The notes beneath the pieces are model-generated. The model was not told the origin of the DNA, made no database searches, and saw nothing but the letters and a program-made list of their open reading frames with translations. The translations under genes were made by a program, and so were the position numbers. From Octopus bimaculoides (Eukaryota), in the NCBI RefSeq assembly GCF_001194135.2, contig NC_068988.1, positions 33,048,242 to 33,112,241 of the forward strand: DNA of 64,000 nucleotides, written 5' to 3'. Positions 13,420 through 47,980 of the stretch are shown here, in pieces; position 1 is the stretch's first letter; each line of letters begins with the position of its first letter.

Positions 13420-14425
13420 GTGTGCGTGTGCGTGTCTGCTTTTACATGTTGGTAAAGTATATGAACTCAAATTTTTTNNNNNNNNNNNNNNNNNNNNNNN
13501 NNNNNNNNNNNNNNNNNNNNNNNNNNNNNNNNNNNNNNNNNNNNNNNNNNNNNNNNNNNNNNNNNNNNNNNNNNNNNNNNNNNNNNNNNNNNNNNNNNNN
13601 NNNNNNNNNNNNNNNNNNNNNNNNNNNNNNNNNNNNNNNNNNNNNNNNNNNNNNNNNNNNNNNNNNNNNNNNNNNNNNNNNNNNNNNNNNNNNNNNNNNN
13701 NNNNNNNNNNNNNNNNNNNNNNNNNNNNNNNNNNNNNNNNNNNNNNNNNNNNNNNNNNNNNNNNNNNNNNNNNNNNNNNNNNNNNNNNNNNNNNNNNNNN
13801 NNNNNNNNNNNNNNNNNNNNNNNNNNNNNNNNNNNNNNNNNNNNNNNNNNNNNNNNNNNNNNNNNNNNNNNNNNNNNNNNNNNNNNNNNNNNNNNNNNNN
13901 NNNNNNNNNNNNNNNNNNNNNNNNNNNNNNNNNNNNNNNNNNNNNNNNNNNNNNNNNNNNNNNNNNNNNNNNNNNNNNNNNNNNNNNNNNNNNNNNNNNN
14001 NNNNNNNNNNNNNNNNNNNNNNNNNNNNNNNNNNNNNNNNNNNNNNNNNNNNNNNNNNNNNNNNNNNNNNNNNNNTTTTGAAGTGCACTATAATTCAATT
14101 AACAGTAGCAAGAGGAATTTGAAGATTTTAGGAAAATTTTTCTCTGGCTATGACCAGCCTCAGATTGCCCAACAATACGACGTCTTTGAAAATGTGACAG
14201 TTCTGCGGAAATTTTTTGTTCGTGGCATGGTTACTCTTCGCAAATGCTTAATATAATGGCACCTGGAATGAAAAAGAATAATTACATTGTAAATTCTACA
14301 CCGCTGAAAACATATTAAGACGTTTAGATCAGAAATTTTGAAAGTTAAACGTGTCTATTTACTCCCTTCATTTCTTTGTATATATACATGTGTGTGTGTG
14401 TGCGTGTGTGTGTATGTGTGTGTGG

Positions 14426-28350: not shown

Positions 28351-30060
28351 AAAAAAAACCCCAAGGACTAACCACTATAGCGAGCTAAATCAAAAGTTGT
28401 TCCTTTAGAATTTTCATTGACGATTTTTCGCAATTTTCATAGGACTTCAAATGTTGTACATACCCAGGCTTGCAAAGAAGTACACAGCCGAAACTTTTAT
28501 ACATCAAACATTATATACTGTCATTGAGCTTTTCATGACAATGCCACATAAAGCCACTCTCTTCAAACATTTTACAACTTTCCATTATACGCTTCCTTTA
28601 CTTAGCCTTTTTCCAAAGATTGTTCTTCCCATTTCTTTACATGCTTCTACATTTCTTTCAGGATGCCTTTCATAAAGTGATTTTACTTTTCCCCAGTAAT
28701 TTATATATATTAACCCATATGTCAGTGGAATCAGTTTAAGCTGTATAGGCCGGAGTTCCCGCAATGCTGAAACCGCCTCAATCTGCCGATATTTACAGTA
28801 ATTAAGGAGAATTGAGCTAACATAATCTAAGCTCTAAAGTTCAGTCCTTAGAAGTGCAGCAATTCCAGAATCTCACATTCCGATTTATATTTAGTTACTA
28901 CAACTTAAAACGTCATTGAACAAAATAAACACTTGAGCGATTCAAATAGAATTTTCATTTGTGCTATTATTGTAGCACAAAGGAAAACCTCGCGTTTATA
29001 TACGTCAGCCTAAATTTACTGATGACATTTCAATGTGGTATCTGTTATCATCTCTCTCTTTTAGTCATCAAACTGTTGGTATATCGGCTTGAATAGATAG
29101 ACAACATTAGTTATTTCGTTGAAAATTAGTACTTAGTATATCATCACTTTTGCCAAACCGTTATCTACGGGAGTGTTAACAAAGCAGCAACAGTTGTCCA
29201 GTGGTTGTGGGAGACAATCACAGACAGAAGGACACGCACACACACGCACACCTATATATATATATATATATATATATANNNNNNNNNNNNNNNNNNNNNN
29301 NNNNNNNNNNNNNNNNNNNNNNNNNNNNNNNNNNNNNNNNNNNNNNNNNNNNNNNNNNNNNNNNNNNNNNNNNNNNNNNNNNNNNNNNNNNNNNNNNNNN
29401 NNNNNNNNNNNNNNNNNNNNNNNNNNNNNNNNNNNNNNNNNNNNNNNNNNNNNNNNNNNNNNNNNNNNNNNNNNNNNNNNNNNNNNNNNNNNNNNNNNNN
29501 NNNNNNNNNNNNNNNNNNNNNNNNNNNNNNNNNNNNNNNNNNNNNNNNNNNNNNNNNNNNNNNNNNNNNNNNNNNNNNNNNNNNNNNNNNNNNNNNNNNN
29601 NNNNNNNNNNNNNNNNNNNNNNNNNNNNNNNNNNNNNNNNNNNNNNNNNNNNNNNNNNNNNNNNNNNNNNNNNNNNNNNNNNNNNNNNNNNNNNNNNNNN
29701 NNNNNNNNNNNNNNNNNNNNNNNNNNNNNNNNNNNNNNNNNNNNNNNNNNNNNNNNNNNNNNNNNNNNNNNNNNNNNNNNNNNNNNNNNNNNNNNNNNNN
29801 NNNNNNNNNNNNNNNNNNNNNNNNNNNNNNNNNNNNNNNNNNNNNNNNNNNNNNNNNNNNNNNNNNNNNNNNNNNNNNNNNNNNNNNNNNNNNNNNNNNN
29901 NNNNNNNNNNNNNNNNNNNNNNNNNNNNNNNNNNNNNNNNNNNNNNNNNNNNNNNNNNNNNNNNNNNNNNNNNNNNNNNNNNNNNNNNNNNNNNNNNNNN
30001 NNNNNNNNNNNNNNNNNNNNNNNNNNNNNNNNNNNNNNNNNNNNNGTGTGTGTGTGTGTG

Positions 30061-30111
<51 letters not shown>

Positions 30112-32383: not shown

Positions 32384-32601
32384 AGGCAGCGAGCTGGCAG
32401 AAATGTTAGCACGCCGGGCGAAACGCTTAGAAGTCTTTCGTCTGTCTTTACGTTCTGAGTTCAAATTCTGCCGAGGTCGACTTTGCCTTTCATTCTTTCG
32501 GGGACGATAAGTTAATTACCAGATGCGTAGTGGGGTCAATCTAATTGAGTGGGTCCCTCTTCCAAAATGTTGAGCCTTGTACCTAGAGCAGAAAAGAATA
32601 T
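32384..32601 (+). mobile_element. Full-length tRNA-derived SINE with Nin-like domain
   Basis: Head GAGCTGGCAGAAATGTTAGC...GAGTTCAAATTC; central GCCGAGGTCGACTTTGCCTTTCATTCTTTCGGGG; tail CTAGAGCAGAAAAGAATAT. Confidence 0.88.
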
Positions 32602-34199: not shown

Positions 34200-34361
34200 T
34201 AATCTCGGCTCCTCTCTCTTTATATTTGCATATACTTAGGTCTCTCTCTCCCTGTCTCCAGTTCCCTCTCTCTTCCCTCTCTTTATCTCTCGAGTATACA
34301 TATATGTGTGTGTGTGTCTCTCTCTCTATATAAATATATATATATATATACGCACACTATT

Positions 34362-34900
34362 TACAACGTTTCATCAGGTGTCTTGGGGAAATTTCGAATC
34401 TAGGTTCTCAAATTATTATTATTAATATTATTATTATTCAATGCCTGGAATCGAACTCGGAATCTTGGGCTCAGTAGCCTGCGCTTTTAACCACTACTCC
34501 ATATACCCGTGGGCAATTGTGGAGTGAATTTTAGGGCTTATAAATCTAATATGCTCATGGTGTAGTGGTTAAGATTGCGGGCTACTAACCCCAAGATTCC
34601 GAGTTCGATTCCAGGCAGTTACTTGAATAATAATAATGATGATAATGTTAATAATAATAAGAAGAAGAAGAAAAAGAAGAAGAAGAAGAAGAAGAAGAAA
34701 AACAACAACAACAACAACAACAACCACAAGAACAACAACAACAACAATTACCTTAAGAAAAATACCTTCAGAATGAGAACCCACGTTTGAAATTTCCCCA
34801 AGACACCTGATGAAGGCTAGAGGGTATATCAGCCGAAACGTTGTGTTGACAACAAACAAGGTGAGGACAAATATCCATCAAATGTAAATAATGTACATAA
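34362..34900. mobile_element. Palindromic element: two divergent tRNA-like heads, each followed by (AAT)n and a PLE-type hammerhead segment (family C)
   Basis: 34442-34500 is the reverse complement of 34559-34617 (A box TGGTGTAGTGG, B box GAGTTCGATTCC). 34364-34410 is the reverse complement of 34774-34843 apart from a 23-nt deletion and a few substitutions. Confidence 0.88.
34802..34847 (+). ncRNA. Minimal type I hammerhead ribozyme (Penelope-type)
   Basis: GACAC-CUGAUGA-A-GGCU(AGAGGGUAUAUC)AGCC-GAAAC-GUU^GUGUU: intact core, 5-bp stem I, palindromic ACGU stem III; predicted cleavage after 34842. Confidence 0.85.
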
Positions 34901-35415
34901 TTCCTCATCTTTTAAATATAGAACTGGAATAAAGATATATATTCACGCACACGCGCATGCACGCATTCAACAAACACACACCTGCACGCACATACACACA
35001 TGTACACACACGCATACAAATATATATTTGTGAGCTTTGATTTGTAAATTGTAACTGTGGAATAGATAGTTCAAATTTACAGAAAAATAAAAGACGAAGA
35101 CAGATGCATGAACAACAAGCAGGTATATTAGTTTGACTCTCGGGAAAGCAGACAGTTGTTTAGTTAATATACTGTGGTACAGTGAAGTGTGCGAAAAAGA
35201 AATACCGACGGAGAGCAAATGAAATTTTCTGAAAATTGGAGAAGAACAGATGAGGTCTAAGAAGAGAGGAAGATTCTTTTAAAATTCGAATCGATAATTC
35301 CGTTGATCTTTCAAACGCGTATTTACTGCTTGCGTATGCGTTTGTGAGTGGTTATTTGTTTATATTTGTTTATATATAGGTTCAACATATATGTGTGCGT
35401 GTGTGTGTGTGTCGA

Positions 35416-35476: not shown

Positions 35477-35612
35477 TATTCTTTTCTACTCTGGGCGCAA
35501 GGTCCGAAAATTTTTGGGAGGGAGCCAATCGATTAGATGGACCTCAGTACGTAACTGCTATTTAATTCATCGACTGCGAAAGGATGAAAGGCAAAGTCGA
35601 CCTCTGCGGAAT
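35477..35612 (-). mobile_element. 5'-truncated Nin-like SINE
   Basis: Reverse complement of the 3' two-thirds of 32384-32601. Confidence 0.85.
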
Positions 35613-40700: not shown

Positions 40701-41384
40701 ATATACAATTGATAAAATCTAGTATTTCTAAAGATACCCCTGATAGGATTTTATGAAACGTTGTAAAATACGGGAGAGTTTTATTGCGAAAATTCTGAAT
40801 GTTTAAACTAATATACCAGGAAATTTGTGAAGCTATAACCTGACAAGGTGAAAGACTAAATGCTTCCGTATAACTCACAGAAGGAAAGAAGGAATGATTA
40901 TTTTATATACTACTGATCATTGTCATGAATCTCTTTTCATATTTGGGACATCTAAATAAATCTCTAATAAAGTAGTGAAATTTCAAAATAAAGTCTTTAT
41001 CAATAGACACTCATTTGTGCTAAATATGGTATTTTCGTATTAAAGGCAATCTTCCGGATGTGTTGTCGGCAGAGTATAGGAAGCATGTTTCTAATAGTTC
41101 TTTTCTTACTGATTTGGAGATGAAGGCTGAAAAATAATAAGCTTATTTTGTACCAACCCGCATCCATTAAATACTCATGTACTCATGTTAAGTTTACATG
41201 TGTTGTGCAAGGCAAATGTCGGATGTATCCAGCATAGTTTTTATGCATGGTCTACCATTTCTTTTACATTATACAGACAGACAGACACACACACACAAAC
41301 ATACACACACAGACACACGCATATATATATATATATATACAGGTTATATCGCCATGGTGGATCGCTAGCCACTACACATTTTTT

Positions 41385-43349
41385 TTAATTTTCTCCCCTT
41401 GTATTTTTCTGTGTTCTTTTCTGAGAAAGATCGCATGCCAAACAGAACTGGATGCGGAAACAATCAGCCACCTCTTATATATGGATGACCTAAAACTGTA
41501 CTCTATAAATGATAACCAGCTGGAAAAATGACTACAGACACTACATAGATTTACAAAAGAAATAAAGATGAAATTTGGCTTAGAGAAATGTGCCAAAGCA
41601 ACCTTGAAAAGAGGAAAATTATTTAAGAGTACCAACATAAAGCTAGATAAAGCAAATAAAATAAGAGAATTAGATCAAAGGTAGATATATAGAACTAACC
41701 AAAATAGACTGGAAAACAAGAAAAATAATGACAGGATTTAGGATGTACCACCCAAAATTCGACATAGAAAAGTTATATATACAACGTATATATACAGCAA
41801 AAAAAACTATTACAAAATAACCACCATAGGACTTTAATACCTACTTTAGAAGCAAGTAAAACTAATACAAATAGCCACAAAACACGAACCAAACAAAGAA
41901 CTGTTTTCAGTATTTAAGGAAGATGAAAAATACAAACAAGAAGTCATACTACCTAACAACTATGAAGAGGAAGAAAAAACAACAGAAGTTGTAAAACAAA
42001 TGAAATCCAAACTAAAACTAGAACAGCAACGGACAATGATAAAACGATAGCAAGAAAAGCCCCTTCATGGCAAATTTTGAGCTAAAATAAGCGCAAAAGA
42101 AATAGACAAAGCAAAATCCCATCAATGGCTGAGAAGCTCGGGACTCAAAGGAGTGACTGAAGGATTTTTATTTGCAGCACAAAACCAAAACCTCCCCACC
42201 ACAAATTCCCAAAACCTTATAATAAAAAGAAACATAAGAAGTAACTGCAGAATATGCGGAGATGGACGACAAACAATAAATCATGTTTCTCTGGCTGCCC
42301 AGTCCTAACTAAGAAGGAATATGTTCACAGACACGACAGAGTTTGGACCTACAAACATTGGAAGCTATGCCAACGGTGTGGAACAACAACAGCAAAAAAT
42401 ATGGTATAAGCACACGCCAGAAAAGATCACAGAAAATGAGAAAGCAACCATACTATGGGATATGCCAATACACAGACAGAGACAGATATAGTTTTCAGAG
42501 ATCATGAAGAAATAGTCAAGATATAGTCGTCCAGGTATAGTTGTCAACGATCATGAAGAAAAAATGCTTCCTAATTGATGTATCAATACCAACAGATACC
42601 AACGTTTCTCTAAAAGAAATGGAGAAACTTTCAAAAAACAAGGACCTAGAAATAGAGGTCACTCGAATGGGGAGTCTAAAAACAGAAACAATTCCTATCA
42701 TAGTGGACGCATTAGGTATGATAAAAAATATTCAAATACATAAGAAAATCACCAGGACTAACAAATATATATAACATACAGAAAATAGCACTACTAGGCA
42801 CTTCACACATCCTACGTAAAACACTTTCAATACAGTAACGATAATAGCATTACGGCAAACCACAGCACATATTCAAGCCGCACAGAGCTGTGCTTGGTAG
42901 GGAATTGAATGCACGGCTACAGCAAATATTCCGCTTAATGCCACAGATTTGCTTATAAGTTGCTTGACCGTAACCAGTTGAGCATGTCCCTTGGCAACTG
43001 ACGATATGTGCAAATCTGATCATGAGCAGAAGTAGTGGGGAAGCATCATAGCAATGTGTCGAGAGGAATTTTGGGTGGTTTGAAATATTCCCCTTCGGAA
43101 ACATGGGTATTTTGCACAACGTCCTTAAACAACCCTTATTCAGCGATTTTTTTAGCAAGATGGGCTACTCGACCAGAAGTAAATTCTAATTGGACACCAC
43201 CTGCGAGGTCATGCGCTGTTTATCTTCATATGAGATCACCATGTCGCACACATGATGCATGTGCCTGGTGTACTCTTATCAGACGGGCAGTCATGATGGG
43301 TATAATGGGCTTCTCATATTTTACCCCAGTGTCATTTTGATGGCATGCA

Positions 43350-43625: not shown

Positions 43626-44250
43626 TTACGTAAGAGCTTCTTGGTAAACAACATTCTTTGATTCCTGGTTTGGATCATAGTCAAATAAATCTTTCAAACT
43701 CCCAACCCTGGAGCAACCAACATAAAGCTGACCATGAGAAATGTAAGGCTCAATTAAATGCAAGCAAATAGATTGCAAAATCTGGCCTTCAGCTTCATTA
43801 ATAGACATTGCGAAGCAAACGTTGCACTTGGAATTGTGTTCTTTGAACTCAAAGGGCATATCTGCTAGTTTGCTTGAAGTTCTTGGAATGAAAACATCTT
43901 CCCCAGACGCACATTCAATGATGATTGTGGCTTCTATCACATTAGGTATCAATGTTTTCACAATCAACCTTATCCCATTGTATAATTTAGGAGGATCTAA
44001 ATTTCTTAGAAGCATTAGTAGAACACCTACCTTCAGAAAAGTTGTATGTAGAGGAGTTGCGGGTGGCTGAAGAGAATTAAGGAACTCTGTTGGGTAATGG
44101 ACAGAATTATTTCCATCAAGGGCTGAATCGACTGATGTGCACTGCTTAATGACTGTTGGAATCGTATTCATTAATTCATGGTTAATCCTTGCTACTGTCT
44201 CATTTTGGGGAGCAAGAGTTGGCCTTTCATACAGCCATATATGTGAATTT
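43626..44250 (-). mobile_element. Helitron-type PIF1 helicase C-terminal fragment
   Basis: WLYERPTLAPQN...YPTEFLNSLQPP...LKVG.LLMLLRNLDPPKLYNG.RLIV...VFIPR...CFAMSIN...SHGQLYVGCSRV: typical PIF1/Helitron helicase motifs. Confidence 0.9.
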
Positions 44251-46755: not shown

Positions 46756-47019
46756 CCATTTATTTTTGTTTTCACTACCAATGTGAATATTTCTCCGTAT
46801 TTCAAATTTTAAGATTCTTTTACCTTGGGTATGAGATGATTTATTATGCTTCAGAATTATTTATTTTTGAAAGAGCATATTTAGTTTTACCAGTCTTTTA
46901 CTTAGTGTATTTGTGTATGTAACTATTTGGAATAGAAGACATGCCTTACTAAATGTATGTTCTTTTTTGTTTGGGAAATGTTGAAATATCTAAAATGTAA
47001 CTATTGTTGTACGTCTCAT

Positions 47020-47980
47020 TCTTGCAGTGGCGATCGTTTGCACATAGCCCCTATTCCTTAATTATCCTAATTTCAAAAAATGTTCTCTTTCATTCCTATC
47101 CATATTGAACTACATCAATTCATCAATGCTATTTATTAATTTGAAAATCCTCCCTAACTTTATTTCAAAATATGGAACGGTCATCCAAGAACTTTCACAA
47201 TTTTCCATTAAAAAAGATTGGAAATGTTGATCAAACTACTTCAAGAGAGGTTATTAATTTTCCTTCTAGTAATCCCATTATTAGTCTCGTAAACATCGGC
47301 ATCACATTTGTCAGTATTGGCGTGACTAGTATTTGAGGAAATATTGTTTATCAAAGAAGTAATTGTTTGCAGCACCAACCGCAATCTTTCCTGAATTCTT
47401 TTTGTGTATTTATCGATCAAGTATTCAACTGCTTCTAATCTTAGTCCATGGGGAATATTTGTGTAGAGACTGGTTACGTCAAAAGTAACTAGAATCGTTT
47501 GTTAATCTACTCTTAGTGGAACGTGAGCTGAAAATTCAGTATCACCTCTAATGAAACTACGGTCGAAATTGAATAAAGGTTTCAAATTTATGTCAAACAA
47601 ATTGCCTAATCCTTGAATTTTAGCTGCTTGATTTGCAAAAAAATTATGTAATTTCAGATTGAATAATTTAGTAATTTCCAGGTATGGTATATATAGATAG
47701 TTTATACTGTTATCGGTGTGTATACAAATAAGTATACACACCATTTCTTTACGTTTTGCTGTCAATATAACTCACCAAAACGATATATGTGTTTCATTCT
47801 TTTGTTATTGCTGTTGTTCTTATGTTTTTCCTTTCTTTCTTTTGTTCCCAAACCTCCAACTCTTCTTGCTTATCTTCCATCCGCTTCCATGTTGTCTTTT
47901 TTCTTCGTCTCATCTTATTTATTAAGTTTTCTCGCATTAATTTGTAGATTTGATGAATTTGATCCTTTATATGCACCCAA
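47020..47980 (-). mobile_element. Degenerate Penelope-like element reverse transcriptase region
   Basis: LKPLF...SFIRGDTEF...ILVTFDVTSLYTNIPHGLRLEAV...LIMGLLEGKL...KFLDDRSIF: PLE RT motifs with stops and frameshifts. Confidence 0.85.

Follow-up and report, generated by a model that had tools for sequence, protein, structure and literature searches.

The minimal hammerhead ribozymes (min-HHRs) of Penelope-like elements (PLEs) are the closest described relatives of the ribozyme reported here. As described by Cervera and de la Pena in 2014 (PMC4209133), they have several features that go beyond the search descriptor of that study itself, namely an extra nucleotide between A9 and G10.1, a G10.1-C11.1 pair, a palindromic ACGU that replaces helix III, and a short helix I. 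Dual min-HHRs on opposite strands, 100-700 bp apart, are also known (PMC4209133). PLE insertions favour microsatellites as targets and can be complex, with tandem and inverted copies, some of them head to head near a microsatellite (Craig et al. 2021, PMC8557442). Here, we describe a locus from Octopus bimaculoides (contig NC_068988.1), which lies in a stretch of 64 kb that was analysed as a whole and that we call the window. Two inverted arms stand at this locus, each headed by an RNA polymerase III (pol III)-type promoter signature and each ending in an intact or broken hammerhead of the PLE kind. We cautiously favour, with about an even chance of being right, the explanation that the locus is an old insertion, made in the style of Penelope, of a short interspersed nuclear element (SINE) that is non-autonomous, has a tRNA-type promoter and carries a PLE-derived 3' module.

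The right arm at this locus agrees closely with PLE min-HHRs (PMC4209133; Lunse et al. 2017, to the extent covered by PMC6765202). It shares with them CUGAUGA, the extra nucleotide, a helix II of 4+2 bp, GAAA, the ACGU palindrome and a helix I of 5 bp, and the octopus pair, like the opposite-strand pairs of PLEs, has its members a few hundred base pairs apart. The differences lie in the surroundings of the ribozyme. No open reading frame (ORF) for a reverse transcriptase (RT) or GIY-YIG protein is found upstream; instead, a head with box A and box B stands about 190-290 nt upstream, and the flanks are unrelated to the PLE families that we retrieved.

A pol III promoter and a hammerhead have been found together before, in the SINE-like Sm-alpha and Sj-alpha repeats of Schistosoma (Ferbeyre et al. 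1998; Laha et al. 2000; in the part of this literature summarized in PMC6765202). These are short non-autonomous repeats that, like the octopus element, hold both parts in one unit. Their hammerhead, however, is a canonical type I ribozyme with loop-loop contacts and often stands in direct tandem, with multimer cleavage possible, whereas the octopus element comes from a cephalopod, is of the minimal PLE type and is inverted. Metazoan non-long-terminal-repeat retrozymes (Cervera and de la Pena 2020, PMC7229834; Li et al. 2026, preprint 10.64898/2026.07.22.740005) are likewise non-autonomous and hammerhead-bearing, and have been proposed to depend on PLEs. In them, units of 170-400 nt with canonical hammerheads are repeated in direct tandem and expressed as circular RNAs, while the octopus copies are inverted, with no direct tandem. 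In neither of these two retrozyme papers did we see a tRNA-like promoter mentioned. The sequence-only reading that preceded our analysis had called the octopus element a retrozyme hybrid, a term that is not apt for a locus with no direct tandem array.

Classical tRNA-derived SINEs with tails from long interspersed nuclear elements (LINEs), including the abundant SINEs of octopus (Ohshima and Okada 1994, as far as reported in PMC10886601; PMC8967140), offer a third comparison. They have a 5' box A/B, a short body and a borrowed 3' module, as the octopus element does; here, however, a ribozyme-bearing module of PLE type takes the place of the LINE tail, the insertion has the form of an inverted dimer, and no similarity could be detected between the head and the abundant SINE families of the window. 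Short non-autonomous Penelope elements have been noted in butterflies (PMC6685494). A 2022 curation guide (PMC8969392) defines SINEs by their dependence on LINEs and gives only retrozymes as possible dependants of PLEs. Our search of the full-text literature on octopus hammerheads, PLE-mobilised SINEs and the sequence strings of the element, a search with Repbase and Dfam outside its scope, returned no description of the element.

Layout of the inverted pair and its ribozymes

Window positions 34363-34844 form an imperfect palindrome with two diverging arms that are ~90% identical. A repeat search recovered a head pair (34442-34502 and 34557-34617; 61 nt, 89% complementary, with 54 nt separating the arms) and a tail pair (34370-34410 and 34774-34814; 41 nt, 90% complementary), and the (AAT)n tracts of the two arms also pair. 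In a gapped alignment, the homology extends from 34502 to 34363 on the minus strand and from 34557 to 34844 on the plus strand, which is to say that it begins 1 nt ahead of box A and reaches GAAACGTTGT. Within the window, the 25-mers taken from head and tail occur twice each; in 100 shuffles they never do. Compared with the left arm, the right arm has additional sequence at four places: GTTAC after box B, an expanded (AAT)(AAG)(AAC) tract, ~28 nt of body and a 23-nt segment inside the ribozyme. Since the arms are ~10% diverged and differ by these indels, an assembly palindrome is ruled out. The two modules, head and ribozyme-bearing tail, adjoin in both arms, and the pair stands head to head with its tails outward, beside (TA)n/(CA)n tracts. 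This is the arrangement that had been read from the letters alone, with two heads diverging from a spacer of ~50 bp and each followed by (AAT)n and a common segment; the spacer measures 54 nt, and the paired tracts and the 41-nt tail pair confirm the rest.

The left arm (34363-34502, minus strand) consists of box A (34491-34501), box B (34447-34457), (AAT)n (34412-34441) and a tail (34363-34410). The 54-nt spacer between the heads (34503-34556) is unique, with no homology between the arms and no match elsewhere; by analogy with two inverted PLE pairs described below (L028 and L047), it may be part of the longer of the two copies, or filler. The right arm, on the plus strand, opens with its head (34557-34622; box A at 34558-34568, box B at 34602-34612) and continues with the internal trinucleotide microsatellite (AAT)n(AAG)n(AAC)n (34623-34745), which is longer than the tract in the left arm. 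The body 5' of the ribozyme (34746-34801) has no similarity to the ribozyme-bearing families of other animals; its final ~28 nt, from TGAGAACC, are common to the left arm. Beyond the complete minimal type I hammerhead (34802-34847) comes a sequence that is missing from the left arm (34848-34927) and that is possibly the 3' tail of the element. It contains the first sense-strand T4 run after the head, at 34910-34913, which is 68 nt beyond the cleavage site and a possible pol III terminator.

Our min-HHR descriptor called for a helix I of at least 4 bp, CUGANGA, 0-1 extra nucleotides, a helix II of at least 4 bp closed by G10.1-C11.1, GAAA, a palindromic helix III with a loop of 0-6 nt, and H17. 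In the 64-kb window it matched at a single site, 34802-34847 on the plus strand, which was still the only one when helices of 3 bp were allowed, and it matched nowhere in 1500 first-order Markov windows. The claim that the right arm holds a complete minimal type I hammerhead that cleaves at 34842 agrees with this result. Helix I is formed by 34802-34806 and 34843-34847 (GACAC/GUGUU, 5 bp), and the core by CUGAUGA at 34807-34813 and GAAA at 34835-34838. An unpaired extra A34814 lies between A9 and G10.1, G34815 pairs with C34834 as G10.1-C11.1, and helix II (34815-34834) has GGCU/AGCC and 2 bp more. The nucleotides C-G-U-U17 occupy 34839-34842, with U34842 as position 17, so that H17 is not G. 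Helix III is loop-less (A-C-G-U at 34838-34841), and AACGUU makes a 6-nt palindrome that is dimer-competent. Cleavage is predicted between U34842 and G34843. Every one of the PLE features described in PMC4209133 is present in this ribozyme, and its RNAfold centroid contains helices I and II. The Rfam hammerhead models gave no match at the locus, whether at the gathering threshold, at E<=10 or in narrow windows; because these models are ill-suited to a loop-less helix III, we read the miss as a limit of the models and not as counter-evidence.

The tail of the left arm ends in CCTGATGA|AACGTTGT (CTGATGA|AACGTT), with a gap of 23 nt relative to the right arm. The gap removes the extra A and helix II, so that the two core boxes are kept and helix II cannot form. 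The left-arm ribozyme is therefore a dead remnant with no fold, and the idea of a hammerhead at the end of each arm is borne out for the right arm and fails for the left.

At the other end of each arm, box A (right TGGTGTAGTGG, left TGGAGTAGTGG) and box B (AGTTCGATTCC) each lie within one mismatch of the consensus that we used (TRGCNNAGTGG for box A and GGTTCGANTCC for box B). The start of box B is 44 nt from that of box A, just as position 52 of a tRNA is from position 8. At this stringency, the window has no box A/B pairs outside the two arms, and 60 simulated windows yielded not one. The locus thus bears a promoter signature of pol III type, and descent of the head from a tRNA is plausible. 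The tRNA head of the sequence-only reading is thus upheld as a real and non-random pair of boxes, and not as a tRNA derivative, for which ARAGORN, Rfam and a search for a cloverleaf were negative (see below). The T-arm region of the head may resemble tRNA-Arg.

Penelope-like elements with the same ribozyme core

We searched the metagenome collection with the pattern CTGATGAAGGC-N(8-22)-GCCGAAACGTT, which has 22 fixed bases and leaves helix I out. The core CUGAUGA-A-GGC...GCC-GAAACGUU, a string identical to the octopus core, was found in at least 120 metagenome contigs, where chance alone would yield, by a rough estimate, a number of order one. Most of the pattern-positive contigs bear JGI metagenome identifiers, and the presence of PLE ORFs, SINEs and tRNA arrays leads us to infer that the contigs are eukaryotic, with invertebrate hosts. 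The matches listed contain 122 ribozyme sites, which group into several families; the counts that follow refer to these matches listed. Helix I can pair over at least 3 bp in 34 of the 58 distinct contexts, against ~9 after permutation, and its many different sequences covary (for example GTC/GAT, TACCA/TGGTA, GCC/GGC, GCAC/GTGC and TTACG/CGTAA). Helix II is mostly extended, to 5-8 bp.

PLE-like RT or GIY-YIG motifs occur at 17 sites. They are on the ribozyme strand at 11 of the 17 and, in 10 of these 11, upstream of the ribozyme, GIY-YIG by about 380-610 nt in most cases (1747 nt in locus L018) and RT by ~1270-2670 nt. The exception is L066, which has a GIY-YIG motif 446 nt downstream of the ribozyme. 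In L018, an ORF of 477 amino acids has both RVT_1 and GIY-YIG above the Pfam cut-offs. With the motif lying 3' of the RT/GIY-YIG coding sequence, the class is that of a PLE 3'-region ribozyme, and the membership of the octopus right-arm ribozyme in it is well supported. The Penelope type that had been assigned to it from the window alone is thus corroborated by the shared core, by the covariation of helix I and by the position 3' of GIY-YIG/RT ORFs.

In each of the four families with the best sampling, the repeat extends beyond the cleavage site by 45-72 nt, so the ribozyme does not set the 3' end there. A subset of copies has an extension of ~33 nt, the 'tail' of Craig et al. 2021 (PMC8557442). 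In one worm-associated PLE family, from invertebrate-associated metagenomes, this optional extension (TTTTCGTGTCAACCTGATGAAACTTTTCACAG) holds a hammerhead-like string that lacks helix II (CCTGATGAAAC). At the loci that bear the extension (L005, L017, L026, L029, L036 and L071), the string lies ~45-80 nt after the ribozyme and matches the end of the octopus left arm in shape, which may inform the origin of the PLE 'tail' extensions.

Two of the metagenome loci, L028 and L047, have a long PLE copy with a short, inverted and 5'-truncated partner, tails outward, and the 3' ends are common to both copies. An inverted ribozyme fragment lies directly upstream at a minimum of 6 further sites. That PLEs often insert as inverted partial repeats, as had been stated when the octopus pair was first noticed, accords with the architecture reported in PMC8557442 and with the topology common to L028, L047 and the octopus pair. 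A box A/B pair within 500 nt upstream of the ribozyme was found at 2 of the 122 other sites, both times as a separate unit ending in a T-run before the ribozyme; one of these (L043) is a genuine tRNA-Thr gene array, and the other (L066) an unrelated tRNA-SINE. Compared with the matches listed, a tRNA-like head upstream of a PLE-type ribozyme is peculiar to the octopus locus. The L043 array (757-1797) consists of three tandem tRNA-Thr(AGT) genes, ~300 nt apart and each with a T-run, and a PLE-type min-HHR lies 330 nt downstream on the same strand.

The octopus DNA available for comparison was the window together with ~69 kb of gap-free sequence from loci L001-L004, a total of 133 kb. These four loci were reached through homologues of a Helitron helicase in the assemblies of O. 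bimaculoides (GCA_001194135.2) and O. sinensis (GCA_006345805.1). No RT/GIY-YIG ORF adjoins either octopus arm. An RT-like fragment with DVTSLYTNIP and FLDD motifs lies ~12 kb from the pair, at 46900-47771 on the minus strand of the window. We take these motifs to be associated with PLEs; neither Pfam nor a comparison with the metagenome PLEs gave confirmation. Used as a query for octopus PLEs, the fragment returned no candidates, and tblastn found a homologue in L004 alone. This homologue (L004 4503-5650, plus strand, O. sinensis) continues into a CxxC linker, KCGKPNCGIC, and has no match in Pfam. The linker is presumably the one typical of Neptune-type PLEs, and it is by such motifs that we tentatively assign the fragment and its homologue to PLEs. 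A satellite with a 102-nt unit (31.7 copies, 95% identity), which has no hammerhead motif, occupies L004 5753-8997. In a different setting, the ENA metagenome contig P0122 (216 kb) and P0121 contain a predicted 'protein' of 1529 amino acids that is the antisense translation of a tandem array of hammerhead units, with 21 matched stretches; the array is a retrozyme-like satellite mis-called as a gene.

Origin of the octopus locus

In the explanation we favour, the element would have a 5' tRNA-type internal pol III promoter, (AAT)n and a 3' PLE module that includes the minimal hammerhead; it would be a SINE that borrowed its tail from a PLE instead of a LINE. Transcription by pol III would begin at the head, pass the ribozyme and end at the T4 run (34910-34913). 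The 3' module would be recognised in trans by the RT/GIY-YIG protein of a PLE, which would integrate the copy and yield the inverted partner. The (AAT)n may survive from the tail of an older tRNA-SINE, in which a PLE fragment landed and so gave rise to the chimera. The ribozyme would most likely be carried within the recognised 3' module and not be an efficient monomer self-trimmer. After insertion, the arms would have diverged by ~10%, and the left arm would have lost helix II (23 nt) and all that lay beyond the cleavage site.

Several features of the locus fit a discrete short element that starts near the head, which we favour. No coding remnant was found between the head and the ribozyme, and with no T4 between the head and 34910, a pol III transcript could include the ribozyme. 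Each octopus arm starts within 1 nt of box A, whereas the PLE inverted pairs of L028 and L047 are cut at unequal points, and the common start suggests a natural 5' end near the head. If the pair arose in one PLE-type insertion, the presence of the head in the left arm means that the head was on the RNA template. As for the SINE/PLE chimera first proposed for this locus, the ribozyme of PLE class, the non-random pol III boxes and the PLE-like layout speak for it, while the linkage of head and ribozyme in other copies does not, none having been found in the 133 kb of octopus DNA.

A number of results weigh against the SINE explanation, beginning with the fact that we have one locus. No further copy of the head or tail was detected in the window by BLAST with a word size of 7, and neither head, tail nor min-HHR was detected in the ~69 kb of L001-L004. 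Exact strings from the head and tail were absent from the metagenome, viral and prokaryote genome collections. When the antisense translation of the element was compared with predicted proteins, a word-indexed search gave nothing and an exhaustive one gave two unrelated ribozyme arrays, neither of them from octopus. The head is negative by all tRNA detectors: ARAGORN called no tRNA gene, the Rfam tRNA model gave nothing at E<=10 even in a search of 196 nt, and folding was no better than in shuffles (z = +1.5 and +0.1), with no cloverleaf. The 7 nt 5' of box A, which would be part of any pol III transcript, differ between the arms. On the PLE side, the lack of resemblance between the flanks of the octopus ribozyme and any PLE family retrieved counts in the same direction, as does the L004 copy, which is interrupted by the 102-nt satellite before any 3' end and so provides no octopus PLE 3' end for comparison.

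The outer ends of the pair raise further difficulties. A candidate target-site duplication consists of AATATATATATATATATACGCACAC at 34333-34357, 5 nt from the left arm, and AATAAAGATATATATTCACGCACAC at 34928-34952, with 21 of 25 positions identical. Among random 146-nt segments of the window, 7.7% align to the left flank equally well or better (p ~0.08); (TA)n(CA)n tracts are everywhere, and the duplication is for this reason not significant. We have rejected it as proof of a single insertion. The distance from the cleavage site to the candidate duplication is 7 nt in the left arm and 85 nt in the right arm, whereas the pairs of L028 and L047 share their 3' ends.

The absence of a second composite copy from the window and the ~69 kb of further octopus DNA would also be expected from chance nesting. 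A truncated PLE 3' fragment would then have landed in the (AAT)n tail of a tRNA-like SINE remnant, and a fold-back error of replication or repair would have produced an inverted duplication of ~140 bp of DNA, with no head-plus-tail RNA ever mobile. PLEs favour microsatellites (PMC8557442), and the octopus tail begins directly after (AAT)n. The left arm, moreover, stops 2 nt beyond the cleavage site, and the tail of ~80 nt that follows in the right arm is missing from it. This fits a partial DNA duplication better than twin priming, where the 3' end is kept in both arms. Such nesting nevertheless requires three separate events, leaves the start of both arms within 1 nt of box A as a coincidence for a random breakpoint, and passes over the fact that head-to-head pairs are themselves a recurrent signature of PLE insertion; we judge it unlikely, though not far-fetched. 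The negative tRNA detectors and the differing nucleotides 5' of box A would likewise suit an inverted pair of ordinary PLE copies that are short and non-autonomous or truncated at the 5' end. Their 'head' would be part of a PLE 3' region or of a short derivative and not a promoter, transcription being driven by PLE or neighbouring promoters. Most min-HHRs in genomes are solitary remnants of truncated PLEs (PMC4209133), and short non-autonomous Penelope elements are known (PMC6685494). Boxes A and B with at most one mismatch each and at the exact 44-nt tRNA spacing, unique to these two arms in the window and absent from all 60 simulations, are hard to reconcile with this, as are the rarity of such a pair upstream of the ribozyme in other animals (the two T-run-closed units among 122 sites) and the want of any coding remnant between head and ribozyme. 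An ordinary PLE pair seems to us improbable.

The coincidence of the left-arm end with the cleavage site bears on the part played by the ribozyme. Arm homology stops at GAAACGTT|GT, 2 nt past the predicted cleavage site and near the candidate duplication, as it might if the element were self-processing in the manner of a retrozyme. Dimerised ribozymes would cut at U34842, the cleaved RNA would serve as the retrotransposition template or form a circle, and the left arm would be its copy. The 6-nt palindrome AACGUU permits pairing of ribozyme with ribozyme, and, were the element tandem or circular, box A (GUGUAG...) could contribute 4 bp to helix I. No direct tandem array is present at the locus, however, the left-arm ribozyme is broken, the four related families extend 45-72 nt beyond the cleavage site, and min-HHRs cleave poorly even as dimers (PMC4209133; PMC6765202), all of which leaves self-processing very unlikely. 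In the class without a helix III loop, cleavage is thought to need a dimer and is weak in vitro and slow (PMC4209133; PMC6765202), and each octopus unit has one ribozyme. The pol III transcript that trims itself, as first imagined for this locus, is therefore doubtful. Self-trimming of a monomer is unlikely, and we regard the ribozyme as a passenger within the 3' module that is recognised, because of the presumed need for a dimer, the single ribozyme per unit and the 45-72 nt kept after the cut in related PLE families. The position of the left-arm end, 2 nt past the cleavage site, points against this passenger view, and we offer no explanation for it.

The two arms could also form a long imperfect hairpin, as would a foldback or miniature inverted-repeat transposable element (MITE)-type DNA transposon or a hairpin small-RNA locus in which the motifs are coincidental. 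Plant MIR precursor models in Rfam align weakly, with 61 and 34 bits, far under their gathering thresholds of 230 and 140. No terminal TA, TTAA or 8-bp duplication stands beside the arm ends, and on this ground we rejected the MITE reading. The arms hold retroelement modules in a definite orientation, and the ribozyme is of a class with ties to PLEs; we give a foldback origin hardly any credence.

The SINE explanation is thus the one we carry forward. Its fuller form, an octopod SINE family with a tRNA-type pol III promoter and a PLE 3' module in which the hammerhead is functional and the left arm was copied from ribozyme-cleaved RNA, strikes us as improbable. A solitary nested relic, if that is what the locus is, would amount to an ordinary PLE footprint next to a SINE head.

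Surroundings and significance

Octopus SINE copies lie elsewhere in the window at 32384-32600 (plus), 61428-61600 (plus), 5723-5880 (minus) and 35477-35612, and none of them has the head studied here. The abundant SINE families of the window are also present in L001-L004, at 72-81% identity. One abundant type terminates in (TA)n(CA/TG)n and seems to be the source of the microsatellites scattered over the window, including those that flank the pair; the right-hand flanking microsatellite is probably the tail of a neighbouring SINE. A fragment of a Pif1-type helicase at 43629-44249 (minus; Pfam Pif1_2B_dom, E 9e-11) shares 79-81% DNA identity with O. bimaculoides and O. sinensis copies and is probably what remains of a Helitron. 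LINE-like RT ORF fragments with LLYMDDLKLY, IPIIVDALG and RDWFDEN motifs are found at 41238-42771 (plus) and 55050-55535 (minus), and Pfam returned nothing for them. At 40736-40770, CCCCTGATAGGATTTTATGAAACGTTGTAAAA has an exact 15-nt string in common with the left-arm end (BLAST E ~0.03) and looks vaguely like a decayed ribozyme; the match is probably due to chance. Runs of N are frequent (for example 6875-7240, 13500-14080, 29300-30100 and 52800-53540) and often stand beside (TA)n or (CA)n. They indicate a short-read draft assembly, in which complex inverted insertions of PLE type may often be collapsed or missing.

The role of the hammerhead in PLEs and the choice of template by the PLE reverse transcriptase are still unclear (PMC8557442; PMC6765202). 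If the favoured explanation is true, a short element that is driven by pol III and has the PLE 3' module alone would be a natural minimal substrate, one that delimits the cis sequence needed by the PLE machinery and that would permit testing whether the fold of the ribozyme or its cleavage is required. SINE-like elements with pol III promoters and hammerheads, and retrozymes proposed to depend on PLEs, are already known; a real family of the octopus kind would add a new form to these. It would extend the concept of the SINE to a third class of autonomous partner, and it could bear on the SINE-rich genomes of octopuses (PMC8967140).

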